The position numbers and the translations under genes are program-made. Below the pieces are notes generated by a model that did not search any database, was not told where the DNA came from, and saw nothing but the letters and a program-made list of their open reading frames with translations. Positions 466 to 61,432 of a stretch of DNA of 64,000 nucleotides are shown in pieces. How positions within the stretch are numbered: the first letter of the stretch is position 1; every line of letters begins with the position of its first letter. This DNA comes from Carpediemonas membranifera BICM (taxonomy: Eukaryota > Protista > Fornicata), in the NCBI GenBank assembly GCA_019828565.1, contig JAHDYR010000025.1, forward strand, positions 434,001-498,000, read 5' to 3'.

Positions 466-1798
466 ATGGACATCAGCGAGCACCCTATATGCCTTAATAA
501 CGGACATCCGAACGCTACTGTATCATGTATACGCGTTGAGCCATCCGAAGGCCAGCTAGTATGCACTGGAGGTCAGTTCTTCTTCATTCCCCTCTTATTC
601 AGCCAGCGACGGAAGCTTATGCCTTTGGAACTATGCTGGGTTATGCCTATTCAAAACATCTGGCCATAAGCGGCCAAGGACACCCGTTGGCTGTGGCATT
701 ACCGACATGGCATGGACGAAAGTCGCCATGATGGGCAAAACACCACTCACGCTCATGATCCTGGCCACCGCGAGTGATGATGGCACAGTGAAGCTGTGGG
801 CTGTCCAGCACATTGCCTCCGGTGGGTTTGAACAGACCCCCTCGACGCCCCCGTCGCTCGTGCTCGTCCACACCGTTCAGGTGACGCCCACCGCCGACGC
901 CGTGACGACAGTGGCGCTGGCAGACATGGTCAGCGAGAACAAGAAGATCCGCATTATCGCTGGCACTGCGGGCGGCGTGGTTGCCCTCCTTAGCTGCACC
1001 ATCGACGCCAACCCTTCCGCCATCTCCGGGTTCAGCGCATTCCTCGAGCCACACGGCACCGTGCACGCGCACGCTGGCATAGTGTCCTCAGTGTCGTTCG
1101 TAGGGTGTCTGGATCTGGCGATGTCGTCCGGCCACGACGGCACGATCAGGACTTGGGCTACTCTGGCCGGCAGGGGGCCCAACGCCAAGCGGGAACTCGT
1201 GGAGCGGGCGGAGGTGATATGCCCCAGACGGTGCCCGCCGGTGTCCTCCATGCTGGTGCCGCACAACGGGCTGACGATGCTCGTGTCCACGATGGACCGG
1301 CCGGCAACCCTCCGCTTGTTCAACCGGGCGAATATGAGGAAAGGAGATGACTCAAGCAGGCCACAGGACATCCCGGCGCAGGGCATGGCGGTGTGGCGCC
1401 AGCTCCCCCGCCGAATGTACACGGGCCACGTCATGGACGTCTTCCCCTGCCGGGCCGTGGCGTGTGGCATCGGAGACCTGAAGCTCATCGCTGTAGGGAC
1501 GGATGACGGACACGTGGTGTTCTACTCCGCATCACAGGGGGCGCCGACGACCCCAGTCAAGACGTTGACCGTTGTTGACCCTGAGTCATTGACTCAAACC
1601 GAGAGAGCGGAGGCTGAGAAGGCGTCTGACCGGGCTGGAGCCTTGATGATGACGGCTGTGACCTCTCTGGACATGATAGAGGCCGACCGGATGGTGGTGA
1701 ACCGGCCTCTGAAGCGGCTCGTGCTGGCTGTGGCCAACCCGAGGCTGGTCAACGGGTGCGGACAGGCGCTCCTTTATTTCATTCAGAAGGCGGAGTAG
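466..1798 (+). CDS. WD40-repeat protein (2 exons; intron 572-602)
   Basis: ATG 466 (MDISEHP..GHPNATVSCI..VCTG) splices into A-SDGSLCLWN and joins ORF 707-1798. WD motifs ATASDDGTVKLW and SSGHDGTIRTW. Confidence 0.8.
572..602 (+). other. spliceosomal intron, 31 nt
   Basis: GTCAGT...CTTATTCAG; removal restores the WD repeat CTGASDGSLCLW. Confidence 0.85.
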
Positions 1799-1900
1799 AG
1801 TGGTATACGCTTGCTAACATGCTTTACAACGTAAACCAATCCCGTTATTATAATGATTGCTTTGCGTCTTATTCTGCGTGTTGACGCCGGAGACGTGAGA

Positions 1901-2599
1901 ATGAACTCGCGAAACCTCTCCAAAGATGATCTTGATGGTCTTTCCCGCGAGAATCTTATACAACTAGTGTTCGAATTGCATGCACAAGTTCGCCAGCTAG
2001 CCGAGAGTCAGAAGGAAACAGTGGAATACCACCGAGTGCTTTCCAATTCAATGATGTGGATAGCTGAGAAGATCAAATCGGCCAATGAAGCAGGAATACA
2101 ACGTCCTATGACGCCATCTCCTCGCCAAACCCCATCACCTCTCAAGCGCAAGGCCAAGGCTGCTCCGCCGCCCCCGCCCGCCAAGCGGGACACCTCATTC
2201 AGCATGCACGACACCTTCAACGATGTGGTCCTCACATATAAGCGCAACACCCGCCACCCCGAACTCACCGCCCGCCTCAAGAACATCACGAGCGATGAGT
2301 TCGAGGAGCTCCTGCCCGACGGCATGGTCGTCGTCCTCTCGGTCATCATCGATTGGCTCTGGGACCCGTTCCTCGTGATCAACGCGCTGGTCTACCTGTG
2401 CGAGACGATGGCCAAGTATCCCCAGGTGTTTGAGACAGTCACGGCACTCGACCCGGACTGGGGCACACAGTGCCACGGTCAACTCAAGAGGCTCGTGAGC
2501 GATGTCAGGTTCGTCGATCGGCTGACTGAGGCAGGGCTGACGGCGGAGGAGGTAGCCAGGGTGGCAGTTCATATTGAGCAGGTGATGGACGCAGAGTAG
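1901..2599 (+). CDS. hypothetical protein (N-terminal coiled coil, Pro-rich linker, helical C-terminus)
   Basis: Long ORF with host-like GC3 bias; AGTAAA at the stop. Start could be 1853. Confidence 0.7.
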   Translation: MNSRNLSKDDLDGLSRENLIQLVFELHAQVRQLAESQKETVEYHRVLSNSMMWIAEKIKSANEAGIQRPMTPSPRQTPSPLKRKAKAAPPPPPAKRDTSFSMHDTFNDVVLTYKRNTRHPELTARLKNITSDEFEELLPDGMVVVLSVIIDWLWDPFLVINALVYLCETMAKYPQVFETVTALDPDWGTQCHGQLKRLVSDVRFVDRLTEAGLTAEEVARVAVHIEQVMDAE

Positions 2600-2702
2600 T
2601 AAAGAAAGCAGTGTGTTGTGGTGATTGATGGTGCTTAATACTGCTCATTTACATTGTTACATGAGTCACGAAGTATGTCGCTCTAGAAGAGGAAAAGAGA
2701 CA

Positions 2703-4379: not shown

Positions 4380-4483
4380 GTGCATAAATTCCTCGATTGA
4401 GCTGCGCTGTGGGGCAGAGATGGGCTGGTTCATTGATGCTGTGGTGTTGATGCGCAGATCTGACAATTCATCAGAGCGAAGTC

Positions 4484-5271
4484 ATGGCGCAGGACCTGTT
4501 CGTTCCCGGCGAGGAAGTGGCAGATATATCTGACCAACTGCGGTATGTACTCCTATATCTGCTCACACAGGGGCCATGGCATCACTACAAACGACACACA
4601 CCTTGTTTCTTCATTATGCGGCATTTCTTCACAGCTACACAAGCTGACGTTCATGACAAGCTTTAAGACGTGGTATCAACCTCGTGTGGGCGACATAGTG
4701 ATCGGGCGCATCGTCTCTATCGAGGGACGCAAGTGGAAGGTCGACGTCGGTGCCCCACAGCACGGCCGGCTCATGATATCGTCCGTGAACCTCCCAGGTG
4801 GTGAATTGGTACGTCTCCAACCCTCATCTTACCCAGCGTCGGCGAGACCAGACGGATGAGCTCAACATGCGATCCTTCTTCATCGAGGGCGACGTCCTCT
4901 CCGCCGAGGTCCAGCAGACCAACCAGGACGGGTCATTCACCCTCCACACGAGGTCTGAGAGGTATGGCAAGCTCGAGCACGGCTACTTTGCCCGTACCGA
5001 GTCCTACCTGGTTAAGAGGGCGAACCGGCACATCCACACGCTCGACAACGGCGTGGGACTTATCATTGGCGTTAACGGGCGGTGTTGGATCAGTGGACCA
5101 AGGCCCATGGCGGCAGGGCAGGGCGAGAGCACCAAGGACATGGCCGATGCCGTTCTCAGCGTCGACAGGCTGCGGGGAGTGGCGCGCACCGCCCGGGCTA
5201 TCGAGGAGCTCACGGCAGAGAGGAAATTTGTGACGCTGGAGAGCATCACGGCAAGACTGGCGGACATGTGA
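4484..5271 (+). CDS. RRP4: exosome complex component RRP4 (3 exons)
   Basis: After splicing 4543-4570 and 4809-4836: FVPGE..LRGHG..YQPRVGDIVIGRI..SVNLPGGELRRRDQTDELNMRSFF..HTRSERYGKL..IIGVNGRCW. Confidence 0.93.
4543..4570 (+). other. spliceosomal intron, 28 nt
   Basis: GTATGT...CTCACACAG; restores the conserved RGHG of RRP4. Confidence 0.9.
4809..4836 (+). other. spliceosomal intron, 28 nt
   Basis: GTACGT...CTTACCCAG; restores the conserved LPGGELRRR. Confidence 0.92.
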
Positions 5272-11628: not shown

Positions 11629-11711
11629 TCTGACTCCGCGACTCACAGACCCCAGCAAGTATCGCCCAGATTCCCGTAAAGATGCTATTTACACCCGTAT
11701 CCGCTAATATT

Positions 11712-17061: not shown

Positions 17062-17514
17062 TTACTTCTTGACAGTGATCTTAGCCACGTAGGCCTTGAT
17101 GCGCTCGACGTTACGGTTGAGAGACTCCTCAGAACGGTTCTTGCGGCGGGTATCAACGCAGATGCCGATGGTCTTAGCGTAAGCGGGGGCAACACCGGCG
17201 GCCTTGAGCTCAGCAACGGAGAAGCCACGGCCCATGCGCATGCGCATGTTGTAGCGCTGGGTCATGCAGTGAACAGCGGGGCGGAGGGCATCAACGGGGC
17301 GGGGAGCCATCTTGGTGGCCTTCTCCTGGCGGGCGTGGCGACGAGACACCTTGCGGCCAGCCTGATCAAGACGGACACGGTACATGCCGAGCATCTTGGG
17401 GCCGTGCATCTTGGGGCGGTGAGTGGAGAAAACGGTGTTGTTGTGGCAAACCTAGAGTAAGAATAGATGCTGTAGAAGGTTCAAAAGCCCTCCTACGTCG
17501 ATGGTACGTACCAT
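17062..17514 (-). CDS. RPL13: 60S ribosomal protein eL13 (ATG-only first exon; intron 17452-17511)
   Basis: Spliced: MVCHNN..LDQAGRKVSRRHARQEKA..PRP..LRPAVHC.T.RYN.RMRMGRGFSVAELKAAG..GICVDTRRKNRSEESL..NVER. Confidence 0.93.
17452..17511 (-). other. spliceosomal intron, 60 nt, with internal hairpin
   Basis: ATG|GTACGT...TTACTCTAG; GTAGGAGG/CCTTCTAC 8-bp stem (one G-U). Confidence 0.85.
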
Positions 17515-24661: not shown

Positions 24662-26733
24662 TTAGTGGTACCCCTCGTCTGGGTTGCGCCGAACAGGGGT
24701 CGACACGCGCCCGGAACGCGTCGTCATCGGTGTGCCCGGCGCCGACCCAGTAGCACCAGGCGCCTTCCGCTTACGGGGCGTGCCGTCGACCCGGGACCGG
24801 AGGACACGAGCCAGGTGCTTCTGTACGTCCTGCTGGTCGTCCTTGGGAGTCTTGGCAGCCTTGCCGCGGGGTGCCTTGACAGGCTTGGGTGTCTTGGCGG
24901 GCTCGGGCTGGCCTAGCTTCAGGTCCTTGGCGAGCTTGGCCAGGGCCTTGTTGGACGAAGCGAGCTTCTCGAACTCGGCCTGGCCGTTGACGAAAGCAGC
25001 CTTGATAATAGCCGCGCCGCCCTTCTCCTCGAAGTGGACGGCCGTGTCAGCGTCAATCATGGCCGCGATGGCCTCAAAGACGGCAGGGCCGTGGGGGGTG
25101 GCGAGGACGTCCTTGAGCAGCTTGTTCTGGCCTCTCAGATGGAGTCTGAATGCTGGCTGGAAGTCTCGGTCCCCGGCGACATGCTCGTCCTCGCTGAACT
25201 CGCCCATGAAGCAGGCGGCGATCTCGCCGGCCAGCTCCTCGTCGGGCTCGATGTAGCCGAGACAGACAGTAAACAGACGCGCCCAGTAGCGGTTGAGCTC
25301 CCCGAGGAGGGCGGGGTGGGCCACCATCCAGTCGGCGATGAACCGCGCGAGGGGCGTCTTGTCGGGGCCTGTCGTCGCCGTGGCAAGCTCCCGGGCGCGG
25401 GTGGCGGAATCCTTCTTGCTCTGGCCGGGGAAGCCGTCAGCGAGGTCGGCCTCGGGTGTATCCTGGATGGCCGGCCAGGTGGAGGTGAGCATGGCCTTGC
25501 GCTGGAACTCGTCGAGGAGGGGGAAGCGCTTCTTGTCGGTCGGGTCCTCGAGGGCGCAGACGAGGGTACGCACGCCGGTGGGGTCGGCGAGGACGGCGTC
25601 CGCCTGGGCCATGAGGTGGCGCATAAACTGCTCGTTGAGGAGCTTAGTGTCGTCGACCATCGTCAGAAGGGCGATGATGAGCATCGCGCCATTCTTGTCA
25701 CAGGCGAGGTCGGCGGCCATGGTCTCGTGCTCGGCGCTGGGCCGGATGCCGTGGACGACCTTCTTCCGCTGGGCGCGAGAGGCGAGGCCAATGACGAGAG
25801 CGGCAAGCTCGGCGCCCTCGGCCGTCTCGACTATAGAGAGTAGGGGCAGGCCGATGTCTGCCTCCTTGTCGATTTCGCCCTTGGCGTTCCGGACCTCTCC
25901 ACAGAGGTGGCCCGCGACGGCCGATACGAAGGCCGTGTCGGAGTCGGACGTGCTGGCCGCCCGGAGGACCTCGGTGAAGAAGGCCATGTTGAGGGTGGAC
26001 GTCCACAGGCCCTTGTCGAGCAGCTTGATGGTCATCTCGCGGTTGGCGTTCCACACGTCGGCGCGCTTGATTGAGGCGAGGTGGTCGCGGAGGGCGACCT
26101 TGCCGGGCTTAGCGAGGAGGAGCTCCTTGGTCGCCTTAGCCTCACGGCCATAGAAGTCGTAGAGGAGTCCGAGCCTGCTCTTGCGGTCGACTGATCTGTA
26201 GAGGAAGTCGAGGGCGACGCTCGAGTAGACCTTGGACGCCAGCTCGGGCACACGGCCGTACACCTGCTTGAGGATGGGTGCGAAGGCGGCGCCCTTGTAG
26301 TGGTGGCGCATGAGGGACTGGCAGACGTGGGTGCCGTAGGCGTCCTTCATCAGGGCCGTGAAGACCGTGTCCCTGCCGTCGTCCTTGGAACCGGCGTCGA
26401 CAATGGCGGTGGCGATCTTCTGGCGCTGCTCGGTGCTGCCGTACTTGATCATGGCCTGGATCACCAGAGAGGATTGCTTCACAGTGCAGAACTCGCTAAT
26501 ATCGTTGCTCTTCGTGTATTCCTTGAGCAGTTGATCAACAATCTTCAGCTTCTTCTCTGTGGGCGTCTCCTTCATCTTGAGAGTTTGGTACAGCTCTTGG
26601 CTCCCGAACACCTTCTCGTATTTGGTGTTCTTCTTCTTCTTGATCTCTCTGCGGTGCTCCTGTGTAATCTAAAGGGGAACCAACATACCTTCTTCTGCTT
26701 CTTAGTGAGAAGAGGCTTTCCGGTCGGCGGCAT
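24662..26733 (-). CDS. Puf6/PUM3-like pumilio-repeat nucleolar protein (intron 26660-26688)
   Basis: SLVIQAMIKYGSTEQR, KDAYGTHV, RAQRKKVV, VDDTKL, SKKDSATRAREL are Puf6/CPL-like motifs. Confidence 0.85.
26660..26688 (-). other. spliceosomal intron, 29 nt
   Basis: GTATGT...ATTACACAG; removes an in-frame TAG and joins MPPTGKPLLTKKQKK to the main ORF. Confidence 0.8.
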
Positions 26734-31747: not shown

Positions 31748-32420
31748 TCAGTCGCGCATAATCCCGACCTTCCGCGAGGTCCGCCCCGAGAGGCTGTAGG
31801 ATGGCCCAGACCGGCCGATCGTCGTGGGTACGAGATATGCTCCAGGGCCAGGGTTGCTCTGCTCGTTGGTGCGGACGCGGTGGCGCCGGCTCATCGAGTA
31901 CTTGGGGCCAGTGCCCACCCCACCGTCGCGGCGACTGTATGCTGCAGGGCCGGGGGAAGCGGTCTGCACGTCCTTGTTGGGGAAGTTGCGGCCCTTCATG
32001 GTCGGCTGGGGGCCGCCGGGGAGTGAGATCTCGTCGCTGCCGTAGTGGCCGGGGCCGGGGAGCACCTCGTGGTTCTCATAGTTGCGGCGGCCAGTGATAG
32101 AGAAGGCTGGGGAGTTCTCACCGACAGAGGAGCCGGCAACACCGTATGCGCCGGGGCCTGGGGATGAGCCGGCCTTGCCAGCGTCGAACGCGGGCTTCCC
32201 GGACATCGAGAAGGCAGGAGTGTTCTTCTGGACGGAGTTTGTGTCGTAGACGTACTGTCCGGGGCCAGGAGTCTGGCCACTACCTGTGTCAAGTGCTAGA
32301 AATCTTGAACAAACGGTTCCTCTGGGCTTGCCGGGAGGCCATGGTGTACGATGGAGTATCAGGCTTGGGAACAAGGCTATATGCGCCAGGTCCGGGACTA
32401 TCAGTAGCGTAGTCGTCCAT
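31748..32420 (-). CDS. SHIPPO-repeat (PGPGxY) ODF3-like axonemal protein (intron 32284-32314)
   Basis: Six PGP(G/A)xY repeats spaced about 30-37 aa, each followed by P(A/S/K)(F/Y)S-like motifs. Confidence 0.88.
32284..32314 (-). other. spliceosomal intron, 31 nt
   Basis: GTTTGT...TTGACACAG; brings an additional PGPGAY repeat exon into frame. Confidence 0.85.
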
Positions 32421-42718: not shown

Positions 42719-43697
42719 TCAGATGTATACACGGCCCGTGACGATGAATTCATTGCCGCAGACCCTACACATCCCCGTCACGTCAGTCTCGCGGATAATA
42801 ACTGACCGGTGACAAAAGGGGCACGTGATGATCTGCTGCAGGTCGAACCCGGCGGGTAGAGGGATCCGCTGGCGGGGTGCCATCTCGCACTCGCCGCCGT
42901 AGTGGGCCACGTGTTCTGCGTGAGAGCCGATGCGGACCAGACAGTTGTGGCAGAAGTCATTGCCACACACGCAGGTCGATATCTTGCAGTTGTCCAGGTC
43001 GCCCTCTCGTGTGGCGATCTCACCGCACCACGGGCAGCGACGGAGGACGGGGACGTTTTTAACAGCGCCCCCGCCCAGTGTAACAAGCTTGCACTCCATC
43101 AGTGTCCTGTTCTGCTCGATAAGGCTCTTAATCTCGCGAGTACGGGTCTTGGCGGCGGGGGATCCAGTAGAAATCGGACACACGTCCAACATGCCATGAG
43201 TGGCTGACCGAGTCGGAGACGGCCCCGGCCATGGCGTCAGGGTCGGGGAGGTCAGGGATGTGTAGGCCACCCTCGCAGTCGGCGAGCACGCGGTGGAAGT
43301 CGTGTAGCGTGACTCGGATCGAGTCGGGCGGAGGGAGCTGGCCGCCGAACACGTGGAAGGCGAAGCGGCGCCTGGTGTCGTCGACTTCGAGCACGGTGCG
43401 GAGGGCGTCCTGCACGCCCTGGCTGTCCGCGGGGAAGGGGCGAGCACGGCGTCGACCGTGAGCGGGTTGGGGCGCACGGGCAGGGCCCGCAGCTGGGCGG
43501 GGGTGAGTGCGGCTAGCGCATTCAATTTTCCCTCGCCAGCTTGCAACACGGCTGCAGTTGGGACATACCGAGAGTTCGGGCTGTGTAAAAGGGACTTTGT
43601 CTTGATACAAGGCTGAAAACCGGCGAATGCAACGAATAATTGCGCCTTTCACCGCTTTGCATCGCAAATAAACAAACCCGGATGGATCCTCCGACAT
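42719..43697 (-). pseudogene. IBR/RING2-type zinc-finger gene with apparent frame disruptions (pseudogene or assembly error)
   Basis: C-terminal RRCPWCG..CK..C.CGNDFCHNCL..H..C; 97-nt intron 43581-43677; the coding-like signal switches frame near 43440 and back near 43200. Confidence 0.5.
43581..43677 (-). other. spliceosomal intron, 97 nt, with long internal hairpin
   Basis: GTTTGT...TTTACACAG, phase-compatible; stems GATGCAA/TTGTATC, TGAAA/TTTCA, GGC/GCC, GCAAT/GTTGC. Confidence 0.75.
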
Positions 43698-43962
43698 CTC
43701 GAAAGGTGAACTTCCGATCTGTTACCCTTACAGTGACGCGTTACACGGTCGAATCAATGCTTTCAGTCCAAAAGCCACTGCCACCATCGGCTCTCCATGT
43801 CAACGCAGCACAGAGAGGAATGTCCCGGGTCCCCCTTCAGGTTCGAGGCAATGCATCATGGCAGGCAGCTTTTAATCGAGTTCTGCGAGCCGTAAAATGA
43901 GGCACTAACAGGCCTAGCGGTGATGAAACGCCAGTTCATGATGCAGTTCTTCATGCCTGGAC

Positions 43963-44246
43963 TCAGTTGTTGTCGAACTCGAAGGGCTGACGGCAGAGGG
44001 GGCACTCGGTCCTGCCATTCTCAAGCCATTTCATGATGCAGTGGATATGGAAGGCGTGAGAACACTTCCCTAGCGCTACCGGGCAGTCATCGCCAGGAAT
44101 AGTGCACTTTGGACAGGCCATTTCGAAAGGCATTTGGCAGATGCCGCAGCTGTCTTCAGACTTGAGCCATTTCCACTTTGCCACAGTATGCCAACTATAT
44201 AAGTACGTTAAACGGGGACGACAAACTCTTTCACCTCAATCTTCAT
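43963..44246 (-). CDS. APC11: anaphase-promoting complex subunit 11 (RING-H2; intron 44195-44226)
   Basis: Spliced [57 protein letters not shown]. Confidence 0.95.
44195..44226 (-). other. spliceosomal intron, 32 nt
   Basis: GTTTGT...CTTATATAG; restores the APC11 N-terminus. Confidence 0.92.
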
Positions 44247-44398
44247 CGGCGAGCTGCGTTTGTCAAAAACTGCGAAAAGACGGAAACAGCTAGAAAGGTC
44301 GGTCATGGAATGAGATACCCGACAGCTCCTGCGAGCATGGAGCCGTTTGAGTTTCGCCGGATTTGACCACCCAGTAGAGTGGCGACGCTTTCAGACGA

Positions 44399-45376
44399 AT
44401 GGGGCAGGTTCTTTCGCACAAATCGTCGTCAGCGCGTAGATATTGCAGCGAAGTGCCACAAAAAGCGCAATCTGCCCTCAAAACTGTTGTTTCCGACGAT
44501 CCTATCACCGCAGTGGGCATGAACGGCACTATCATCGTTGGATGCGCCGATGGCTCACTCTCAGTGTGCTCCATGGACGATCTATCCCTCAAACGGACCG
44601 TTAGGCTGGCCCCGTCCTCTGTCTCGTCCATGGCTGTGGCCCCAGACCATTCCCGCCTCGCCGTCGCCCTCAGAGACGGCTCCATACACATCCTCGACAG
44701 CGACCTGGCCCCCGTAGCGACTATCCCGGATGCACATGAGATGAATATCAGTGCCCTCTGCTTCAAGGATGCCACCACACTCTTCTCCGGCTCCAGGGAC
44801 AACTCGGTCGTCCTCTGGACCCTCACACCCGCCCCGGACAGGATATCGCAGTTTAAGGTCGATAGGAACATCGTGACTGTGCTGTGCATCTCCCCCTCTG
44901 ATGGGACGGTGATCCAGGGCTCCGAGGACCTCACGCTCCATGTATTAGCCCCTGCAACACTCGAGGAGGTCTCCACAGTCGAGCTGGGCAACCACTTTCC
45001 CCACTGTATGGCTAAGCTGGACGAGTCCCGCATCGTCATGGGGCAGACGGGGTTCAATGGCGACGGGTCCGAGCTCCTCGTGTTGAACTGTGACACTATG
45101 GCCATAGAGGCGCGGTGGGCCGGCCACCAGTATGCCGTGAAGGGGGTTGGGTGTGTTGGGCGCCGTGTGGTCTCTGCATCACGTGATATGACCGTCAGAC
45201 TGTGGGACGAGGGGTTCGCTGGGACCAGCGAGGTAGTCCCGCTCGCGTCTGCTGGGGTGGCTCTTGTGACCGGCCCTGACTGTGCCGTCAGTGTGTGTCA
45301 GAATGGGGCTCTGGTGAGGCACGTGGTCAAGGACGGCCGAATGGCGGAGACACACGCGACGGCTTCCTTGATGTGA
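44399..45376 (+). CDS. WDR31-like WD40 protein (possible N-myristoylation)
   Basis: MGQVLS; SGSRDNSVVLW, RNIVTVLC, SEDLTL, GFNGDG motifs resemble WDR31. Confidence 0.7.
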   Translation: MGQVLSHKSSSARRYCSEVPQKAQSALKTVVSDDPITAVGMNGTIIVGCADGSLSVCSMDDLSLKRTVRLAPSSVSSMAVAPDHSRLAVALRDGSIHILDSDLAPVATIPDAHEMNISALCFKDATTLFSGSRDNSVVLWTLTPAPDRISQFKVDRNIVTVLCISPSDGTVIQGSEDLTLHVLAPATLEEVSTVELGNHFPHCMAKLDESRIVMGQTGFNGDGSELLVLNCDTMAIEARWAGHQYAVKGVGCVGRRVVSASRDMTVRLWDEGFAGTSEVVPLASAGVALVTGPDCAVSVCQNGALVRHVVKDGRMAETHATASLM

Positions 45377-45507
45377 GCGGACGGGAATGTATATTGATAT
45401 TAAAACAGGCTCGTCCGGGATGGTATGTGGTTAGAGGTACGGTGTGAGAACTGCTTGCCCTTGGTTTGGGCGATTGAATATATCGCAGTTTATGTCATTT
45501 TTCGAAG

Positions 45508-46326
45508 ATGTCTGAGAGCGAAGCCAGCGATTTGCCGCCTCTTGAGGAAGTTGATGACGTTATCGATGCGTTGGACCTCATGAACCTCGACATGTTTGAA
45601 AATGTGAAGGATAAGGAACCCGACTTCGAGCTTTCAGCTGAAGCCAAGCGTAGAGCCATTGTCCACGCCAACGACGGCGAGGTGAAGAATGCGATCGTCG
45701 ATATATCCGATGCCATATTCCACAACCCGAGGAGTGCTCTCCTCTTCGCATATAGAGCCAAGTACCTCATCCAAGAGGGCTTCCCCTCCGCCGCTCTGAA
45801 GGACTGCAAGGTCGCCATGTCCCGCCAGCCCAACAGCACATGCGCCCTCCTCTACAAGTCCCTGGGCAAGGCCCAACTCGCGATGCAGCAGCGTGCCGAG
45901 GCGATCGCATCACTTAGGACCGCCCAAAACATCGACTTCGACCCAGACATCGCCCAGACGCTCAAGGAGCTAGTAGCGCTAGAAGCAGAGGCTGATCGGC
46001 AGAAGGCCAAGACCAAGGCGGCCACAGACGACATCCTTCGTGGGGATAAGGCGAAGATGAACCACGGCCCCAACCTCCAAGTGCCCGAAGACGAGTTCGC
46101 CTTCAACGCGTTCAAGAACCTCGCAGATCAGGCCAAGCAGCCGAACCCCGCCTTCCTCAGCAATCTTGCCGCGGACCCAGAGCTCATGGCACTGATGATG
46201 GACCCCGAGGTCGGGAGGATGCTCGCTGAGGCTGGTGGAAACCCGCAGAAGGCGGCTGAGTATGCTAATAACCCGAAGTTTCAAAAGGTCATCGCAGCTG
46301 TGCTGGGCAAGGCCGGGAAGCAGTAG
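45508..46326 (+). CDS. Hsp70-interacting protein (Hip/ST13-like; TPR + STI1/DP)
   Basis: DAIFHNPRSALLFAYRA..AALKDC..NPNS-like TPRs, IDFD, DPELMALMMDPEV..NP..YANNPK. Confidence 0.85.
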   Translation: MSESEASDLPPLEEVDDVIDALDLMNLDMFENVKDKEPDFELSAEAKRRAIVHANDGEVKNAIVDISDAIFHNPRSALLFAYRAKYLIQEGFPSAALKDCKVAMSRQPNSTCALLYKSLGKAQLAMQQRAEAIASLRTAQNIDFDPDIAQTLKELVALEAEADRQKAKTKAATDDILRGDKAKMNHGPNLQVPEDEFAFNAFKNLADQAKQPNPAFLSNLAADPELMALMMDPEVGRMLAEAGGNPQKAAEYANNPKFQKVIAAVLGKAGKQ

Positions 46327-46447
46327 TTGGGGACTGGGTCGACTGTAAAATGACACGTTAGAGATGCACAGGTGGAATGGAGTTCGCATCGGGGACATTT
46401 CCTGCAGCATCTTGTTCCCAATGCCGGTTTCACTATTCTGCGCAACA

Positions 46448-47677
46448 ATGCCGTCCGGCCGGGAGTGGGTTGATAAGCGCGGTGCTAGGACTGATGCGGC
46501 TGGTTGCGTCTTCCAAAAAGGCCATTACCCGCGTTGGGATGGCGAGCGCAACTTCACATATGATCTATTGGCGCTACAGGCAGGATGCAAGTTCAAAATG
46601 GGCCGTTTCAACGAGGACGAAGCATATACGGTACGGAAGATCGTTCAGGACACTATGAAAGACTCTGGCTACACCCTAGATGACGTAGTTCCCTGTCTTC
46701 GCGGTGAAAAAGACCTCAGCGTCAACCTCATCTATACGGTGGCAGAGTGCCTCCCCAAGCGCCAGATCAACCAGGTCCGCCGCTACATATACCACAACTA
46801 CGCCGAAGTCACCGGTATGTGGACCGAAGAGGAGCGCGACGACCTCATCCGCCTCTACGGTCACGGCATGACCCTCGCGGAGTTGTCACTGGAGCTTGGG
46901 CGATCAAGGATGAACATCAAGGACATGCTCGACGCCATCCAGCGCCCTGGTGGTGACGGAGGCGACCATCTCATCGACAGAGACCACCATTCGCCCGAGG
47001 AGCGTTGGGCGATCGTTCGGGCAGTCATCCAAGAGTACGGCCGGCCGTCCAAGGTCCCCGACGTCATCTCCCAGGCCGTAATCCGCAGTGTAGCAGCGAA
47101 AGTCGACCTGCGTGAATCCCAGGTGGCGGGAGCTGTGAAGAACGAGTGGTTTCACTACATGATCCGGGAATGCGTGCTGAACGGGGACGACGGAAGCAAC
47201 CTCAACCCCCGCCTCCCCCGCCTCGGTCTGATCCACGTTGTCCGCGTTCTCCTGGCGATCTCCCAGTCGCACTCCCCCACGGAGTACTCGATCACTTGGG
47301 GCAGTTTATGTCCAGATGTCCCCCACTACGTCGCCCAGAAGATGTACAGCGTGGTGAAGAAGGCTACGAAGGTCAAGGAGCATCCGAAGGTGACTCCGGC
47401 CGTCGTGGCGCTCACTGTACTGAAGCAGTGGCAGCGGCGGCCCGAGACCCTGCTCCTTTCCAAGATGTGGAGCCTGGAGCGGAGGAATAAGACTGGTTTC
47501 GCTGCAGCTCGGATGGTCCACGAGCTCCAGCTGCCCAAGCTCAGTAAGTATCTGAGGCGGGCGGATTTGGACACGAAGTTCGAGTCAGCAGCCAAGAGGC
47601 GGCTGAAGCACCTGGCGACGGAGCCGATCTCCGACATGAGGGCGAGGATGTGGCTCCAGGAGCTTGGCAGGGGATGA
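46448..47677 (+). CDS. Reb1/TTF1/DMTF1-like Myb-domain protein
   Basis: KMGRFNEDE, LPKRQINQV, GMWTEEERDDLIRL..LAELSLELGRS. Confidence 0.65.
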   Translation: MPSGREWVDKRGARTDAAGCVFQKGHYPRWDGERNFTYDLLALQAGCKFKMGRFNEDEAYTVRKIVQDTMKDSGYTLDDVVPCLRGEKDLSVNLIYTVAECLPKRQINQVRRYIYHNYAEVTGMWTEEERDDLIRLYGHGMTLAELSLELGRSRMNIKDMLDAIQRPGGDGGDHLIDRDHHSPEERWAIVRAVIQEYGRPSKVPDVISQAVIRSVAAKVDLRESQVAGAVKNEWFHYMIRECVLNGDDGSNLNPRLPRLGLIHVVRVLLAISQSHSPTEYSITWGSLCPDVPHYVAQKMYSVVKKATKVKEHPKVTPAVVALTVLKQWQRRPETLLLSKMWSLERRNKTGFAAARMVHELQLPKLSKYLRRADLDTKFESAAKRRLKHLATEPISDMRARMWLQELGRG

Positions 47678-47978
47678 GGCTGGGTCGGCACAAGGACAAG
47701 GACGGCGCTGATAAATGCGATTGGGAGGGCGATTGGACGCTGTCATGAATCTATTTGCGGGCTGAAGAGTAGAGGGAGTCGGCAGTGATTCTACACATGA
47801 CCTGGTCGACGCGTTCCAACAGTCAATCATGGTCAAGCAAGTCCGGTTCGAACATGGTCGGCCTGTTAACCAGGAGCTCACGACTACCCTTCTCCTCATG
47901 GTCATGAGTTGATTTGACCGACCGAGCCCGCGGCCACTGCCATGTCATGGTGCCACGGAATCTTGAATCAACTTACCA

Positions 47979-48357
47979 ATGCTCTCCTCGCTTTCTCAAT
48001 CTTTCACATTCGGGCGTCTTCTTGGCGTAACCCCCATTACAACTGCACAGCTCAAGCAGAAGGTCACTGACGGCGAAACCATGGTCGTCGACTACTTTGC
48101 GACGGTACGTTGAAATTTGCGCTTTTACACAGTGGTGCGGTCCTTGCAAGGCTCTTAAGCCCACATTCCATCAACTTGCAGACGACAAGAAGTTCGAGAA
48201 GGTCTCTTTCTACACCATCGATATCGACGAGAACTACGACGCAGGGGTTCTCAGCGTTCCCACTGTCCGGTCCTTCCACATGGGCGATCAGATGGACGAG
48301 ATGATCGGCTGGCAAGGTCCTGACCGTCTCGAGGAGCTCGTGAAGCAGGCAATGTAA
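47979..48357 (+). CDS. thioredoxin with MRO-type N-terminal presequence (intron 48105-48132)
   Basis: Spliced MLSSLSQSFTFGRLL..VVDYFAT|WCGPCKAL..SVPT. Confidence 0.92.
48105..48132 (+). other. spliceosomal intron, 28 nt
   Basis: GTACGT...TTTACACAG; restores DYFATWCGPC. Confidence 0.95.
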
Positions 48358-49036
48358 ATTTCGAAAATTTTGTCGGAGGATGAACAGGTGTGGCAGTGTA
48401 CTCGTGCTTAACAAGGTGACGGATTCAGGATGCTGAGGTATCGTCGATTGTTTGCTCTTTGAATTCGTCAAACTAAACTGCGCGTGACTTTGAGCGCAAC
48501 AGGTGTGATCGCGCAATTTCTCCTCGCTGATTCCTTCCTATGCTCTGAATTTAACAACAGTAAGTTAGCTTCCCGGACTTTGTCGTTTGGACTTTCTATT
48601 TGTATACAAGATTGTGTCGTCATGATGAACGTTTTGGGAGTCATGTCTGATGGCCGTGGTGAAGGCCGGGTATACGATATAGGGTGGCCATAGTGCTCGC
48701 AGTCATTCAACTGGCCGCGTGTCTCCATAAGCCCAAAATTACAGCTACTTACGCAGTCAATGTATTTCCCTTCGTAGATCTCCAACGATCGGTCAACTTG
48801 ACCTAGCATTCGGTATATGTTCGGTTAGAGCCCCTACTTTACCATAAATAGCCTTCTTTATTTTTGACCTGTGCGTCAATCATCGCCAAAACGATCAGTG
48901 ACCCCGCAACCGCCGGCTTCACCCCTATGACTACGCAACGATGCCGTTGTATGCCACAAAAGTGGACTCAATACGCTCAGGATTTCGTGGTGACCAGCCA
49001 GGACTCAAAGTCTCAAACAAAAGAGAGGCGACAGAC

Positions 49037-52000
49037 ATGGGCATTTTTGCTCGTTTTGCGCTGCTTGTTCTCTTGTTCAGTGCAGCTTGCACTGCAATAG
49101 ACATTAATCCGGCGTTTTATCGCAAGGCTCTCGCCGAGACCGAGTCTATGTTAGTTTCCTTATAGCTCGCCATTCACGGCTTTGCTTGCCTAAGAACTCA
49201 TTTATACAGGTTCGTGTCATGCCAACAGGACATCCTCGGCATTAGTGGCAACGCTAACCGCATCACCTGCTACTACTTCGGAACTACGATGCCCGACCCC
49301 ACGATCAACCCCGTTGTGACCGTCGACGCCTGCTGGGGCACCTCCATCACCAACTCCTACGTCAAGGCGGGTACCTCCGTCTCTGGCACGACGACATACA
49401 TCCACTCTGCGACGTTTGACGTCCCGGAGCCGACCTACGTTCCCAACTACAACCGGTACAACTGCCTGTGGAAGGTCTCCACCGCTATGAAGGTTCTGTA
49501 CAGCTCTGACCGCGACATCCTTCTCTCGATGACGCACGACACTGTCACGTTCGACACAGACGCCGACTGGGTCTACGTGGCTGGCGACAACTCGGCCGGC
49601 CAGATCGACAGCGACACGTCCAAGGCCAACGTTGACGTCCCCACCAACCTCTGGAGCAACGCGCCCTTCAACTACGAGGCCATCGCCAACGTCGAGATCG
49701 GCGACTCCGCCTTCGTCATCACTGACGAGGGCGAGCTGTGGTCCCTGGGCGGCACCAAGTACCCCGGCCACACTGTCGGCAGCACCGACGTATGGCGCCA
49801 GATCATCCCCGCGGGCACGGACAACATCGTCTTCACGCAGGTGTCGGTCGGCGCCAAGCACGCCATCTTCCTCGGCTACGACAAGGTCACGACACAAAAC
49901 CACGTGTACACTGCCGGTACCGGCCTCGCTGCTGGCGTGGACGCCGGCCTCTACGTGACGCTCAAGGAGATCACGATGTTCATGGGATGGGAGGTCAAGG
50001 AGGTCCAGGCGACCGAGACGGCCTCGTACGTGCTCCTCGACAGCGGTGAGATCCTCGCCGTCGGTGGCAACGACTTCGGTGAGCTCGGAAACGGCGGGAC
50101 GACCAGCTCGTCCACGTTCAACGCCGTCACCCTACCCACTGACTTCGGCAAGGCTGACGAGCTCGGCAACACCCAGGGCGCCTTCATGTTCGCAATCAAC
50201 ACCACCGGCAGCGTCGTGGCCTGGGGAGAGAACAACAAGGGTCAGCTCGGCCTCGGGGTCAACGACAACTTCGTCGCCACCCCCACTGTCGTCGCGTCCC
50301 TCCACGGCATGAAGGCCCAGACGATCGTTGGCGGTCTCGACTTCTCCCTCGTCCTCATCGAGTCCAGCTTCCAGGTCTACGGCGCGGGTGACACCGCCTA
50401 CACCGGCACGGACCCCGCTATTGTCACGGGCAAGACCACCAACGTCTTCGCCAAGTCTACCCTCGTCCCCACCCCCACCGCTGAGATCGCATGCGGCACC
50501 AAGCACGCCGTGGCCCTCACCGTCAGCCACACGAGCACGGACTCCCCCGTCTACACCTGGGGCGACAACTCGGCCGGCCAGCTCGGCCTCGGACACGACG
50601 CGAAGAGCACCGCCACGCCTACTCTGGTCCCCACCCTCTCTGACTCCTCGTTCGAGCGTGTTTTCGCCGGCCAGGAGCACCTCATCGCTATGGAGTCGAC
50701 CATGATCAAGGACGAGGCGTTCTACGAGATCTACCCCGACGGCATGGTTATGGTGGAGTCCCTCGAGGGCACCGTCGGCCGCTCCGTCCTCGGGGCCGTG
50801 TCGCAGTACAACGCCGCCTTCTCGAAGACCGATGTCGCCGTCATTGACCCCGTCCCCGGCGTTTACTGGATCTGGGCCGACGGCGCTTACCCGATCACCG
50901 ACGAGATCCTGCGGTTCACCATCCGCAACGGGGCCCGGGAGAAGTCCTTCCTCTTCCACATCCCGACGCAGGTGTCGATCAAGCCCCTCGCAGACAGCGT
51001 CTCGTGGCGATACACGGGCGACGCCTGGGTCGCCGAGGTGAAGCTCCGTCACGGTATTATCAACGGCCTGATGTCCCAAGTGACTATGGACTGCATGGGG
51101 CTCGTCTCCTCGTCGTTTATGCTCATGGCGATGGACCAGGCCTCGACGTCGTGGGACATCACCGTCCGGTCCATGCACAGCACCATCAAGACCACCCCGA
51201 TCTACCCCTACTACGCCAAGTGCACCCTCGCCATTGACGGCGTCGACCTGTACTCCGGCCCGCTCGGCACCCAGCTGCCGATGGACCTGACGCTCTCCTC
51301 GTTCGAGATCAAGGACCAGACGCCCTACGTCTACTACGGCTCCCAGATGACTGCGTGCATCAAGCCGATGGACATGTTCAACCGCTTCATCCCCATGAGC
51401 ATCGACGAGCTCGACGACAAGGTCAAGTTCGTCGCGGTTTACCCGACCACCGTGTCCAGCGAGCAGACCGAGACCCTCGAGCCCATGGGTGTCCACCAGA
51501 AGTTCTACTTCGACGAGGACGACCAGCGCTTCTGCCAGACGATCGACACGAACTTCCCCGTGTCAGGTCAGATCCAGGCCCTGTACGAGGGCGAGATCAT
51601 CGGCGAAGAGAAGTTCGTCATGATGCGGGCCGACTCTGGCACCTCCAAGGTCTGGGTCAAGAACCCTCCCCGCTGGCCCGCCGCACCTGGCAAGCCGCTC
51701 ACCTTCTGCGCCACGGTGTACAACGTGCTGGGCACTCACAAGATCACCAACGCCCCCCCGCTGTCCTTCGACATCGACATCCGCGGCACGGACGGCATCC
51801 TCAACTACAACCCCATCCTCGACCCCGCCACCGGCGACTACTGCATCACGATCGCCGTCCCGCCCGGCAAGTACTCGTTTACCGCCTTCTTCAACGGCGT
51901 CCAGGAGCTTCAGGGCGGCTCTTCCTTCGAGGTCAAGGCTGCCGGCAAATCTTCTAGCATCAAGTCCACTGCCTCGACTGTCATTGACTTCCTCCTCACC

Positions 52001-52492: not shown

Positions 52493-53966
52493 ATGCCCGC
52501 TACCATCGAGAACCTTATCGAAATTGTCAAGCGCCGCGATCCCGTTCGTCTCCTGCAGTTTCAGCGCTCAGCGACTGCTCCTTCCTTGACATACGCTGCA
52601 CTCTTCGTACAAGCGGCCCATTGAAGGCGTAGCAGAAGCACCAGTGCCCATTCCTGCCTATTACCCACTGACACAGGGCCAGCCCGAGTTCCAGCAGGCC
52701 GCCTTCGAGGTCATCGAGTCTGTCCGCCCCCTCCTTGAGAAGGAGCCCAAGTACATCCCCATCATGGAGCGCATGCTCGAGCCCGAGCGCGTCATCCAGT
52801 TCCGCGTCCCCTGGATCAACGACAAGGGCGAACAGGAGGTCAACCGTGCCTTCCGCGTTGAGTTCAACAGCGCCCTCGGCCCCTACAAGGGCGGCCTCCG
52901 CTTCCACCCCAGCGTGAACCTCTCCATCATCAAGTTCCTCGGCTTCGAGCAGATCCTCAAGAACTCCCTTACCACCCTCCAGATGGGTGCCGGCAAGGGT
53001 GGCTCCGACTTCGACCCCAAGGGCAAGTCCGACAACGAGGTCATGCGCTTCTGCCAGTCCTTCATGACCGAGCTGTCCCGCCACATCGGCGCTAACACTG
53101 ACGTCCCCGCTGGTGACATCGGTGTCGGCGGCAGGGAGATCGGCTACATGTTCGGTCAGTACAAGCGTGTCCGCAACGTCTTCGAGGGTGTCCTTACCGG
53201 CAAGGGCCTCAACTGGGGTGGCTCCCTCATCCGGCCCGAGGCTACCGGCTACGGTGCCGTCTACTACGCCCAGAACATGATGGAGGCCAACGGCATGACC
53301 CTCAAGGGCAAGCGCTGCACTGTCTCCGGCTCTGGCAACGTCGCCCAGTTCGCCATCGAGAAGCTCCTCGACCTCGGCGCCATCCCCGTGACCTGCTCCG
53401 ACTCGTCTGGCTACATCCTCGAGGAGAGCGGCTTCACCCGTGAGCAGCTCGCTGAGATCATGCGCATCAAGAACGTCGCCCGCGCTCGCATCTCCGAGTA
53501 CACCAAGTTCTCCAAGACCGCCAAGTTCTTCCCCGGCAAGCGCCCTTGGGAGGTTGCCTGCGATGCCGCCTTCCCCTGCGCTACCCAAAATGAGGTCGAG
53601 AAGGCTGATGCCGAGGCTCTCGTCAAGGGCGGCTGCAAGTGCATCTCCGAGGGTGCCAACATGCCCACCACCCCCGAGGGTATCGAGGTCTACCTCGCCA
53701 ACGGTGTCCTCTACGGCCCCGCCAAGGCTGCCAATGCCGGCGGTGTCGCTGTCTCTGGCCTCGAGATGGCCCAGAACTCCCAGCGCCTTGCCTGGACCTG
53801 CGAGGATGTTGATGCCAAGCTCGCTAGCATCATGAAGAACATCTTCGACAACTGCGCTAACAACGCCAAGCTCTACGCCGACAAGCCCACCAACTACATG
53901 GTTGGCGCCAACATCGCTGGCTTCGTCAAGGTCGCCGACGCCATGCTCGACCAGGGCTGCGTGTAA
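52493..53966 (+). CDS. gdhA: NADP-dependent glutamate dehydrogenase (GdhA type; intron 52544-52676)
   Basis: KRRDP|[65 protein letters not shown]. Confidence 0.97.
52544..52676 (+). other. spliceosomal intron, 133 nt, folded into a long imperfect hairpin
   Basis: GTTCGT...CTGACACAG; nested stems GCAG/CTGC, GCGCT/AGTGC, CTGCT/AGCAG, CCTTC/GAAGG, CGCT/AGCG. Confidence 0.9.
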
Positions 53967-56585: not shown

Positions 56586-57107
56586 TTACATCGCGATGCA
56601 CCCGCCCGAGCTCTTGGGCTTGTATGAGCCGGGCTTGTACCCGTAAAGGAACTTGATCTGGTTGTTGTTGAAGCACCCGCGGCGGATCTTGCGGATGAAA
56701 GTGCACGCGTCAAAGGCGCTGATCCCGCTCTCAATGAGCGCAACGGCTACGAGGACGGGCGCGCGACCAAGTCCGCTTTGGCAATGGATTGCGATGGGGC
56801 CAGGAGATGTCCCCTTGAAGTGATCGTGGACGATCTCCATGAATTCGGCGAGAATTTCACGAGGTGGCGCGCTGCCATCATCAAAAAGAAGGTCCTGGGT
56901 GAGTCAAGAAGAAGAACTGGAACTGACGTTGATAGAAATGCCCGCGTTCTCGAAGGGCTGTTTGTTATAGCCGCTGACGATCGAGATCATTCTCTGGACG
57001 TCGTGCTGCTTGAACAACTCAAGGTATTGCTCTGTGTTCTCGTCCTGGGGGCACTCTACTATCAGGAACGCTACTTTGTTCTTCTCAATAAGGCTTGCTC
57101 CGCTCAT
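56586..57107 (-). CDS. PRL/PTP4A prenylated protein tyrosine phosphatase (intron 56895-56927)
   Basis: FLIVECP, FDDGSAPP, HCQSGLGRAPVLVA, IRKIRRG..N..Q, CaaX CIAM. Confidence 0.93.
56895..56927 (-). other. spliceosomal intron, 33 nt
   Basis: GTCAGT...CTCACCCAG; removes an in-frame TGA and restores GISINDLLFDDG. Confidence 0.92.
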
Positions 57108-57378: not shown

Positions 57379-57983
57379 TTACAACCTCCGTATCTTCTTT
57401 TTGTCCTTCTTGGGCTGAGCGGGTTTTGACCCTTCTTTCGCATGGACACTACTGTGTAAGCAAGATCACAACTAACAACATACGTCCACATTCTCGCCCG
57501 ACTGACATACTCCTCGTAATCCTCCATCTCCAGCTTGGCGGCCTCATCGTTGAGCGCAGACTCGGGGAAGGGCTCGAGCAAGAGGCAGCGGATGATCATC
57601 AGCACATGCCGAAGGGTGGTGTCTGGGGTCCAGTCCCGCTTCAAGACCTGAGTGAGACGGCTGCAGTGGACATACGTTGACGCAGATCTCCCCATCGACG
57701 CTGATGTTGGGGTGAAACACCTTGGTCATGAACCGGCCGAGGGGCGGCGAGTTGGGGTAATCGGAAGGGAACCGGAATCTTGGTGAGAGGCGCAGTGGGG
57801 AACATACTTCACGAGGAACTTGCCTCCTTCGAATGGGGACGCCTCTGGGCCCTCCAACGTGGCGGTGACGTCCTGGATGTTGGTTTCATTAATCGCAATC
57901 GTCCAGCCAGTTGGCTGATCATTAACCATGTCCTTCAGCTGTGCCATGATTTGCTTCATGGCTGAAATGGAGAGATCACTCAT
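57379..57983 (-). CDS. UBE2S: ubiquitin-conjugating enzyme E2 S (4 exons)
   Basis: Spliced: [69 protein letters not shown]. Confidence 0.95.
57452..57483 (-). other. spliceosomal intron, 32 nt
   Basis: GTATGT...CTTACACAG; restores the UBE2S C-terminal KKKIRRL. Confidence 0.92.
57648..57675 (-). other. spliceosomal intron, 28 nt
   Basis: GTATGT...CTCACTCAG; restores ICVNVLKRDW. Confidence 0.95.
57779..57807 (-). other. spliceosomal intron, 29 nt (AAG acceptor)
   Basis: GTATGT...CTCACCAAG; restores KFRFPSDYP. Confidence 0.9.
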
Positions 57984-58879: not shown

Positions 58880-59092
58880 CGCTTGCATGCTGGTAGTGTG
58901 TTGCCCTGGCAGGTGCCTTCGCAAAACTGCACCGTAGGCAGGCGTGACATCCGGCGTCCACCAGCCTGCGCACTGCCTGAGCACGCTATAGCCTGGTCCT
59001 ACTGCCCACTCCAGTCATTTGCCGGTCACCACCAAGATCAACAACAACAGGACGGCGTTTAAATGTATGTGGTACAGACCATATGGCGGCAT

Positions 59093-59410
59093 TCATTGGT
59101 CGTTCATGGCCTGGACAGCGATGAACTGGTAGCCCGCCTCGGGGATGGCAATGATCTCGTGCTTCTGCGACCGAATGCGGACAAAACGAAGATCGTTTGT
59201 GGGATCAATGTCACGAACTGACGCACGGCTCATGGCAGTGAACTGGGAGACGAGAGTAGCGTATTTGCTGCTGAGCTCCTGGTCTTCGAAGGTTGTGCGC
59301 ACGACATCGCCGTCATTTGAAAGGATTACGACACCGAGAACGCCGGGTTGCGCAGAAATGCGAGAAAGAGTAGCCTCGACTTCGTTTGTAGCCTGTTTTT
59401 CCCCGCTCAT
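59093..59410 (-). CDS. dynein light chain roadblock/LC7
   Basis: EVEATLSRI..GVLG..VRTT..VRDIDPTNDLRFVRIRSQKHEI. Confidence 0.95.
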   Translation of the reverse strand: MSGEKQATNEVEATLSRISAQPGVLGVVILSNDGDVVRTTFEDQELSSKYATLVSQFTAMSRASVRDIDPTNDLRFVRIRSQKHEIIAIPEAGYQFIAVQAMNDQ

Positions 59411-59725
59411 GATCAAGAGCCAAGTTTTGCAATTATGAGCCGTATCCTGCGCTTTGCCGGATGGCCTCACTATGACGCCCGACAGGGCCTCGGTACGACT
59501 GAGAGCCATCTGGGTAGGTAAATCATGCCAACGTTTGCGTGGTAGTGGGATTATGGGGCAATGCGGGGATGGTTGCCAAAGTCGCTCTCTCGATCCCTGT
59601 GACAAGAGGCCCCTGTTGGAATGCCCCATCAGCTGATGACCATCGCGAGGCAAATGCCCCTAATCAGACGACTCCGGGGTAACTTTGACCAAACGCGAAA
59701 TCGCTGATCGCCACACGACGACGCC

Positions 59726-61432
59726 ATGAGAACAGTTTCTTTCATTCTGTTGATCGTGGTACAGCTGCTAATTGCTGTTACCGCAGAGCCTTTGAAGTAT
59801 TGTGCGGAGCCGCTGAAGTCGAAGCCTGGCCAGTTCACCATCTACGAGGGGCATCACCCTCTGTGCTCGTCGTTTCTGACGTACGAGGCCTCGCTCGAGA
59901 AGGATGGCTGGGACCGCGTCCAGATGACCGTCAATCCGGCCGGAAGCTTCTCCGATTTGACGAAGATGGCCGGCCTCGGCTTCCTTGAGGGCAACATTCT
60001 CGCCCCCCGCATCACCGCTCACCGCGAGAACTTCCTCAAGGCGTTCACAGACGACTTCTTCAAGGGCAAGGGCATCCCGTCCGGCGTGATGGACTTCCTG
60101 CAGTCCAACATCGGCTACCTTCGCTACAACTGCAAGGCCACGCCTGACGATCCTTACTGGGCTAACATCAACCTCATCCTCGGTCAGGTCGATGGTATGC
60201 TTGCCGGATACAACGCTGCTATTGCCGCCGGCACTGCGGGCACGACAACTGCCGTGACGATCGAGGACCTCTACCTCCTGATGTCCCAGGGCGACCTCCT
60301 CGACATCGCCAAGATCGTTGACGCCAACAACCGCCCCGACTTCTCCGCGATGACACCCGTCGAAGTTGACGAATATCTGGCCAAGACGAGCCACTGCTCG
60401 GCCCTCATCAGCTTGGACGACGACTACGAGGATCTCGTAGCAGGCCATGCCACGTGGTTCCTGTACTCCGCGATGACCCGCATCCTGAAGGAGGTCGACC
60501 TGACTGGTATCGCCTCTGAGCACGTTAAGGTCAAGTCGAGCGTCTTTTCGTCGTACCCAGCAGTCCTAGCCTCCGTGGACGACTTCTACACGACCAGCGC
60601 CCAGCTCGCGGTCATGGAGACCACCAACAACATCGTCGACCAGGACCTTTATGACGGTCTCACGCCCCAGGCCGTCCTGACCTGGATGCGCGCCATCGTG
60701 ACCAACAGACTCGCCACGACCGGACAGGAATGGGTTGACACGTTCAAGCGCTTCAACTCGGGCACGTACGTCTGCCAATGTTTGTTCATGCGGGGGTTAT
60801 AACTGACCCGCCCTCTTTTTTTTCTTTACACAGGGATGATTGTCGATTACAAGCAGTTCACACCCGGCGAGGAGCCCGAGGAGGACTCCGGCCTGGTCAC
60901 CATCATCGAGACGATCCCGGGCGGGTCTGCTGATGCTGACGTCACCGACGTCCTGCTCGACCAGGGCTTCTGGCCCAGCTACAACATCCCGTACAGTGAG
61001 ATCATCTACGACGACCTGGGCTATGACACGCTCGAGGAGAAGTACGGCGACATCTGGTCATACGCTGAATGCCCTCGGGCTACGATCTTCAAGCGTGACG
61101 CCCCCGCCGTGAACCACATTGGTGACCTCGGCCGTCTCCTCCGCGAGAACAACTGGGAGCACGACGAGTTATCCCTCGGGAACCCCGGGAACGCCATCGC
61201 TGCCCGCTACGACCTCCGCAAGCCCGCCCAGGGCCCCATTGCTATGGGTGCCATCGACGCCAAGGTTGTCGACGTCGCCCACATGAAGGCCGGGCACATC
61301 ATGGCGATCGCCGGCCCAACCTACTCCGGCCAGCCCGCGTGGCAGTTCAGCAAGAGCTCGCTGTTCTCGCCGCACGCGGGCCTACCCGACGGGCCTTGGC
61401 GCTATGGTTGGCAGCAGTTCCCCCAGGAATAA
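59726..61432 (+). CDS. phospholipase B-like (PLBD/Ntn hydrolase; intron 60780-60833)
   Basis: Signal peptide; SHCSALI nucleophile; MTRILK; SSYP..SVDDFY; METT; NSGTYVCQ|WMIVDY; WPSYNIP; AARYDL; GAIDAK. Confidence 0.93.
60780..60833 (+). other. spliceosomal intron, 54 nt, with GC hairpin
   Basis: GTTTGT...TTTACACAG; restores NSGTYxxQWMIVDY; GCGGG/CCCGC stem enclosing 22 nt. Confidence 0.9.

Follow-up and report, generated by a model that had tools for sequence, protein, structure and literature searches.

Are the introns of Carpediemonas membranifera, a free-living fornicate related to the diplomonads, held to one length, and are those exceeding it folded back to size by an internal hairpin? 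The question is raised by a 64-kb stretch of the genome of strain BICM (contig JAHDYR010000025.1, positions 434,001 to 498,000; hereafter the window), in which introns of about 30 nt are accompanied by five long ones, and for which a preliminary description had proposed a fixed-length system with every longer intron compacted by an internal stem. The answer reached here is that the hairpin rule is better described as a strong tendency than as a fixed ruler, and that its limit is soft. We consider it probable, though well short of certain, that introns are recognised across their length under a short, soft limit on span, and that in the longer ones a hairpin restores the standard span.

The evidence is collective, and it comes from the comparison with dinucleotide-shuffled controls which the preliminary description had itself put forward and which supports part of its reading. 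The curated set comprises 20 non-redundant introns of 46–133 nt, five of them inside the window and 15 outside it, accepted on the basis of reading frame, homology or position in a 5'UTR; structure computations were restricted to pattern matches with a locus reference. The interiors of 19 of the 20 fold better than their shuffles (mean z -1.24 at 22 °C, p = 4e-5; mean z -1.40 at 37 °C), while length-matched controls stay near zero, with z of -0.12 for intergenic DNA and -0.05 for coding sequence (CDS; Mann–Whitney p about 1e-5 against the introns). The excess is significant in the 15 introns from outside the window alone and in the 10 backed by homology or RNA alone, and it persists under a block shuffle keeping the composition of the arms and the middle separate (z -1.18, p = 8e-6). 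The antisense strand of the same introns has a z of -0.61, the sense strand folding better (paired p = 0.015). Adding unsupported candidates (n = 28) gives a z of -0.90 (p = 1e-4); the eight pattern matches lacking frame or homology support, held apart as a control class, have a mean z of -0.12. Fifteen introns of 34–41 nt show no pairing excess over shuffles (z -0.22). The collective pairing signal in long introns is thus real, though weak in individual introns.

The five long introns of the window all have GT..AG ends with the consensus signals of the genome, and are the following:

17452–17511, minus strand: 60-nt intron directly 3' of the RPL13 ATG, with an in-frame stop at the intron end and PF01294 downstream; 8-bp stem, arms of 15 and 20 nt.
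43581–43677, minus strand: 97-nt candidate intron in a frame-broken gene model, with strong signals and structured; unconfirmed.
49150–49209, plus strand: 60-nt intron of an RCC1-repeat gene, absent from RNA contig X1; the weakest hairpin among the five.
52544–52676, plus strand: 133-nt intron of a glutamate dehydrogenase (GDH) gene, supported by homology to the annotated paralogue P0001; long interrupted hairpin, arms of 11 and 19 nt.
60780–60833, plus strand: 54-nt intron of a phospholipase B gene, splitting the Pfam domain PF04916 (Phospholip_B); 8-bp stem, arms of 12 and 21 nt.

Four of the five claimed introns are well supported, one by RNA (49150–49209) and three by homology, with searches run exon by exon. 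The unspliced GDH frame contains a stop, removed together with the intron, and the spliced model, whose N-terminus is restored, agrees with the annotated 446-aa paralogue at 435 positions; the nearest match of the window GDH is a C. membranifera paralogue. Model positions 294 and 295 of PF04916 become contiguous across the phospholipase B intron. Poly(A)-bearing contigs aligned on 43380–49330 (X1–X4, one sample, whose RNA nature we infer) omit exactly the RCC1-gene intron and a short intron at 44195–44226, so that the junction check by RNA proposed for the window succeeded for these two. It did not reach the 97-nt candidate, which is covered by no RNA contig and shows no homology; its unspliced frame is open and the frame switches twice downstream, so that it is plausible but unconfirmed. 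Codon bias in this gene (42719–43697, minus strand) changes frame twice, near 43435 and near 43130, which reads as two compensating indels, whether by assembly error or decay; the C-terminal part of the gene is Cys-rich. All five introns contain inverted repeats, as had been described, but taken singly none clearly beats its shuffles: z is -0.4 for the whole GDH intron and -1.2 when constrained, about -1 (-0.9) for phospholipase B, about -0.6 (-0.65) for the RCC1 gene, -0.6 to -1.7 for the 97-nt candidate, and -1.4 to -1.9 for RPL13, a borderline case (p = 0.05).

With the splice signals forced open, pairing probability is 0.1–0.2 at nt 7–10, 0.6–0.75 from nt 13 and 0.06–0.27 over nt -19 to -10, shuffles giving about 0.45. 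Pairing is thus located between about nt 11 and nt -19, the first 10 and the last 19 bases being low, and the two arms of 10 + 19 nt add up to the modal intron length (about 29 nt). The linker is about 23 nt and the distance from the stem to the likely branch A about 13 nt. Like short introns over their full length, the arms are poor in G. The stems themselves are heterogeneous, most having 4–12 bp and often 4–8 bp, and G-U accounts for 23 of the 242 predicted pairs.

In the mechanism that would best account for these patterns, introns are recognised across the intron (intron definition), and efficient pairing of the two ends would need a short effective span, 25–41 nt being tolerated without structure. 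Beyond roughly 45 nt an intron would persist mainly if the added sequence folds into a hairpin. This would begin about 10 nt past the 5' site and stop 19 nt short of the intron end, about 13 nt from the branch A; the two arms left on either side, single-stranded and G-poor, would then total about 29 nt, the standard intron size. The signals, the size distribution and the collective pairing excess with its position and strand bias are observed; from them we infer the formation of the hairpins in vivo, a dependence of splicing on them and, as the cause, a limit on the distance that the spliceosome can span.

Several points weigh against this reading. The sample from outside the window derives from one strong-signal pattern and was curated by hand after some stems had been noticed by eye. 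Single-intron z values are modest, with p < 0.05 in five of the 20, and the five window introns lie at -0.4 to -1.7, RPL13 alone being borderline. RNA confirmation covers just two junctions, and of the five window stems the weakest belongs to the 60-nt intron confirmed in this way. The median arm sum is 29.5, only slightly tighter than in block shuffles, and because these give 27 the positional profile is partly compositional. The ensemble effective length is 31.6 ± 4.0 (range 22–39) in real introns and 29.6 ± 5.1 in shuffled ones, which are indistinguishable; the original argument, that subtracting the stem leaves about 30 nt, loses its force, since nearly any sequence of this size, once folded, has an effective length of about 30, which alone is no evidence. 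There are, moreover, unstructured candidates of 49–62 nt, so that the word "every" goes beyond what is shown: a 49-nt 5'UTR candidate (L032), whose splicing is putative, has no stem, and TTTCA-expanded 59–62-nt candidate copies of a 37-nt intron show no fold. The latter are four tandem copies in a repeated gene:

L029, L030, G000:C67:776348 and 787625: TTTCA-expanded copies of 59–62 nt.

One of them keeps a 515-codon frame, and together they are a natural test of the length limit. Finally, no clean covariation set was obtained. Anecdotally, and in favour of the reading, one pair of paralogues has 2 differing columns out of 30 in the stem region and 9 out of 10 in the 3' arm, while in a second pair the stem region and the arm diverge alike. 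A 131-nt candidate at G000:C39:899048–899178 (minus strand), whose first 80 letters resemble the window GDH intron, is probably the intron of a diverged GDH paralogue and as such would suit a covariation test.

The excess of pairing could also be explained with no distance limit at all, if selection merely keeps the snRNP-binding ends open and the stems hide decoy splice sites, serve regulation or speed turnover. The G-poor arms, shared with short introns, are consistent with this, as are the failure of effective length to discriminate from shuffles and the presence, in some long introns, of internal acceptor- or donor-like sites in the stem region. Most long introns, however, have no internal decoy site, the excess pairing persists under block shuffling and is restricted to introns above about 45 nt, and open ends alone would predict common long unstructured introns, of which few are seen; this explanation is rather unlikely. 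Lengthening by inverted duplication at the DNA level or by small palindromic insertions, with no selection at the RNA level, would make the stems a mutational by-product, in line with the low share of G-U pairs and with an antisense strand that is also below zero (-0.61 to -0.74). Since the sense strand nevertheless folds better (p 0.015–0.019), intergenic DNA has no excess, the stems lie at a constant distance from both ends, and inspection of unrelated long introns revealed no common insert sequence, such an origin appears improbable.

Least probable of all, and very improbable in our view, is the idea that small structured RNAs, whether single-hairpin H/ACA-like or other guides, are carried in the long introns and set free once these are spliced out. 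In many long introns the last letters are ACA and three further bases, and several are found in genes for ribosomal proteins or translation, yet this ending is the ordinary branch point plus acceptor, found in short introns too, and the short, heterogeneous stems speak against such RNAs. Rfam searches of the window and 15 loci (110 kb) gave no match at the gathering score, a search in which divergent guides would be missed.

Genome-wide, matches to the pattern GTWYGT..TTACACAG were counted against a reversed-pattern control, giving 164 vs 6 at 20–33 nt, 82 vs 13 at 34–53 nt, 32 vs 7 at 54–84 nt, 21 vs 5 at 85–115 nt and 20 vs 11 at 116–146 nt; at 147–177 nt no excess over the control is found (11 vs 12). 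Many matches come from repeated genes, the copies having the same flanks, and some long ones are nested short introns; by a reading of the listed matches, the 34–53-nt bin holds about 35 distinct sequences. Junctions of this size occur in the genes for HSP90 (37 nt), dynein (37), RPL13a (36), legumain (40), EF1-gamma (46) and H2A (47). The mode is 28–29 nt (30 of 54 short introns). The distribution is therefore a sharp mode at 28–29 nt with a continuous tail to about 135–145 nt, not two classes with a gap. Candidate 5'UTR introns lie just upstream of the start codons of the genes for RPS3 (L022, 66 nt), RPS17 (L044, 40 nt) and ornithine decarboxylase (the 49-nt candidate at L032). Three unrelated 5' parts (L001, L008 and L055) sharing a 3' stretch with an acceptor-like end and similar downstream DNA are likely to mark the end of a repeat element and not introns, and the loci L095 and L092 were set aside as belonging to unrelated organisms.

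In the window 21 introns were counted, 15 of 28–33 nt, one of 37 nt and five long, in place of the 18 (13 of 28–33 nt) listed at first. The gap at 34–53 nt claimed for the window is false, as the 37-nt intron falls within it, and elsewhere introns of 35–49 nt occur. Nor are the introns of fixed length, unstructured ones spanning 25–41 nt. The remaining introns of the window are:

572–602, plus strand: 31-nt intron of a WD40 gene, with signals and frame restored.
4543–4836, plus strand: three short introns, from the gene model, 4543–4570 (28 nt), 4605–4634 (30 nt) and 4809–4836 (28 nt).
26660–26688, minus strand: 29-nt intron, from the gene model.
27687–27723, minus strand: 37-nt unstructured intron located in the SRF/MADS domain of a MADS/SRF gene, the upstream exon spanning PF00319 positions 8–34 of 48; no fold.
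27809–27840, minus strand: 32-nt intron of a MADS/SRF gene, from the gene model and Pfam.
29229–29676, minus strand: two introns from a gene model, 29229–29259 (31 nt, inside a Walker A motif) and 29648–29676 (29 nt).
32284–32314, minus strand: 31-nt intron, from the gene model.
44195–44226, minus strand: 32-nt intron, absent from RNA contigs X2, X3 and X4.
48105–48132, plus strand: 28-nt intron just upstream of a thioredoxin WCGPC motif, from the gene model.
56895–56927, minus strand: 33-nt intron, from the gene model.
57452–57807, minus strand: three introns of a ubiquitin-conjugating-enzyme-like gene model, 57779–57807 (29 nt), 57648–57675 (28 nt) and 57452–57483 (32 nt; an alternative donor would give 25 nt).

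A candidate at 30034–30067 was dropped, and introns of 245, 261 and 150 nt called by a self-trained gene finder were discarded for weak signals and over-calling, the finder being unreliable also on the assembly of a relative. The contigs X2–X4 also contain a polyadenylated 354-nt transcript from 48498–48851 (tail beyond 48851), in which no plus-strand ORF of 100 codons and no Rfam match were found. A contig look-up with one window protein and a PROCT search each gave no match.

The introns share a 5' signal, GTWYGT, and the sequence YTYAC-H-YAG, a fusion of branch point with 3' site; in the acceptor matrix the distance from the branch point to the 3' splice site is near-invariant, with one-base variants at 17452 and 57779. 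The branch A is likely at -6, where the consensus A is present in 41 of 54 short introns. U2 snRNA (RF00004) is full length and conventional, with six matches of 56.8–67.8 bits against a cut-off of 46; matches lie at G000:C63:801904–803035, C9:97754, C58:4914, C3:144428 and C63:415319, two of them forming an inverted pair 0.8 kb apart. The C. membranifera introns are U2-type spliceosomal introns, as shown by GT..AG segments removed at RNA joints, homology across other junctions and the presence of U2 snRNA. All introns examined are contiguous (cis), none having halves on separate transcripts. Introner elements were rejected, since identical introns carry identical exon flanks and are thus copies of repeated genes.

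Intron definition also accommodates the exons of 2–3 nt seen between standard introns. Of tandem 3-nt exons there are 28 occurrences, against none in controls. In the legumain gene (L031:1501–1572, minus strand) a 2-nt exon lies between a 30-nt GC-AG intron and a 40-nt one, and supplies the one residue otherwise absent between Pfam positions 45 and 47. At L078:1218–2240 (G000:C4:171566–172588, plus strand) 15 consecutive phase-2 introns of 28–36 nt are predicted, the exons between them measuring 3, 6 or 9 nt; the predicted array would yield an open, Cys/His-containing N-terminus missing from the public annotation J8273_1030 (144 aa). Further tandem 3-nt exons are found at G000:C5 (13 copies), C8:509919, C26:321109 and 400408, C63:301247, C13:965409 and C54:593487, and in one such gene family the exon triplets AAA and CTG are kept while intron interiors drift. 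Single 3-nt exons lie between two apparent 5'UTR introns at L005:1501–1602 (plus strand) and L009:1562–1564 (minus strand), and an 11-nt coding exon at L020:1066–1076 (minus strand). One 72-nt call in L078 proved to be two short introns around a micro-exon and was split accordingly; the long introns in general are not such pairs, as no internal signal pairs were found in the curated 20.

Some comparative hints come from the assembly GCA_002919055.1, with an EF1-gamma 52% identical, which probably represents another Carpediemonas. Anecdotally, its 30–32-nt introns end in CTAAC-N-CAG, in keeping with a branch A at -6, and a 52-nt intron of a Spg1/Tem1-like GTPase gene has a 10-bp stem with arms of 8 and 19 nt (z -1.7). 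Its EF1-gamma gene (L091:6577–7803) has neither of the two introns, of 46 and 56 nt, that interrupt the C. membranifera counterpart.

For Giardia, Spironucleus and Trichomonas, Hudson et al. (2019, PMC6679479) predicted that long introns form stems bringing their ends to short-intron spacing; they suggested that the property is more widespread and proposed hairpin breakage as a route to trans-splicing; the rule and the idea of a cis-to-trans precursor, both contained in the preliminary description, are thus not new inferences. As described there, Giardia lamblia, Spironucleus vortens, S. salmonicida and Trichomonas vaginalis resemble Carpediemonas in a uniform short class, a fused branch point and 3' site, and stem-loops in introns above about 50 nt. 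Those parasites, however, have 3–65 introns per genome (PMC5874029, Table 1), as against 21 in 64 kb in the free-living, deeper-branching Carpediemonas, whose modal length of 28–29 nt is below that of Giardia (35–45 nt) and Spironucleus (40–43 nt). Carpediemonas also differs from them in a likely branch A at -6 and a full-length conventional U2 snRNA. In Giardia, intronic pairing draws together the splice sites of trans-spliced split introns (dynein, Hsp90), which PMC6679479 proposes as the end state of a broken hairpin; the Carpediemonas introns studied are all cis, and most of their stems would, by the standard of that paper, be too short to hold split halves.

The zipper stems of Saccharomyces (Rangan et al. 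2025, PMC12350175) work alike with about twice the linker. The yeast model requires 20 nt or more between stem and branch point and a linker of at least 42 nt, so that the Carpediemonas values of about 13 and about 23 nt fall outside its geometry; Carpediemonas introns are ten times shorter than the yeast introns with zipper stems, which occur in part of the yeast introns only (PMC12350175).

The metamonad rule of compaction by hairpins previously rested on a few dozen parasite introns folded by MFOLD, a method whose description in the portion of PMC6679479 at hand names no shuffled control, unlike the test made here. No paper on the spliceosome and intron lengths of Carpediemonas was found. 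The rule itself having been published (PMC6679479), the novelty lies in testing it against shuffles and in measuring its geometry, both in a lineage that is free-living and richer in introns. The 10 + 19 geometry offers a concrete footprint for comparison with spliceosome structures. A stricter version, possible but doubtful, is a spliceosome with a hard tether of about 23 nt between the 5' site and the branch point, half the minimum modelled for yeast, which would reject unstructured introns above about 45 nt genome-wide, allow strings of 2–3-nt exons and independently yield a trans-spliced split intron; if it were true, one genome would hold all stages, from short cis through hairpin cis to trans. 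With far more introns than the parasites, public RNA-seq (SRR15678499, PMC8516963) and a conventional U2 snRNA, C. membranifera makes the rule testable genome-wide and datable to before parasitism and intron loss.

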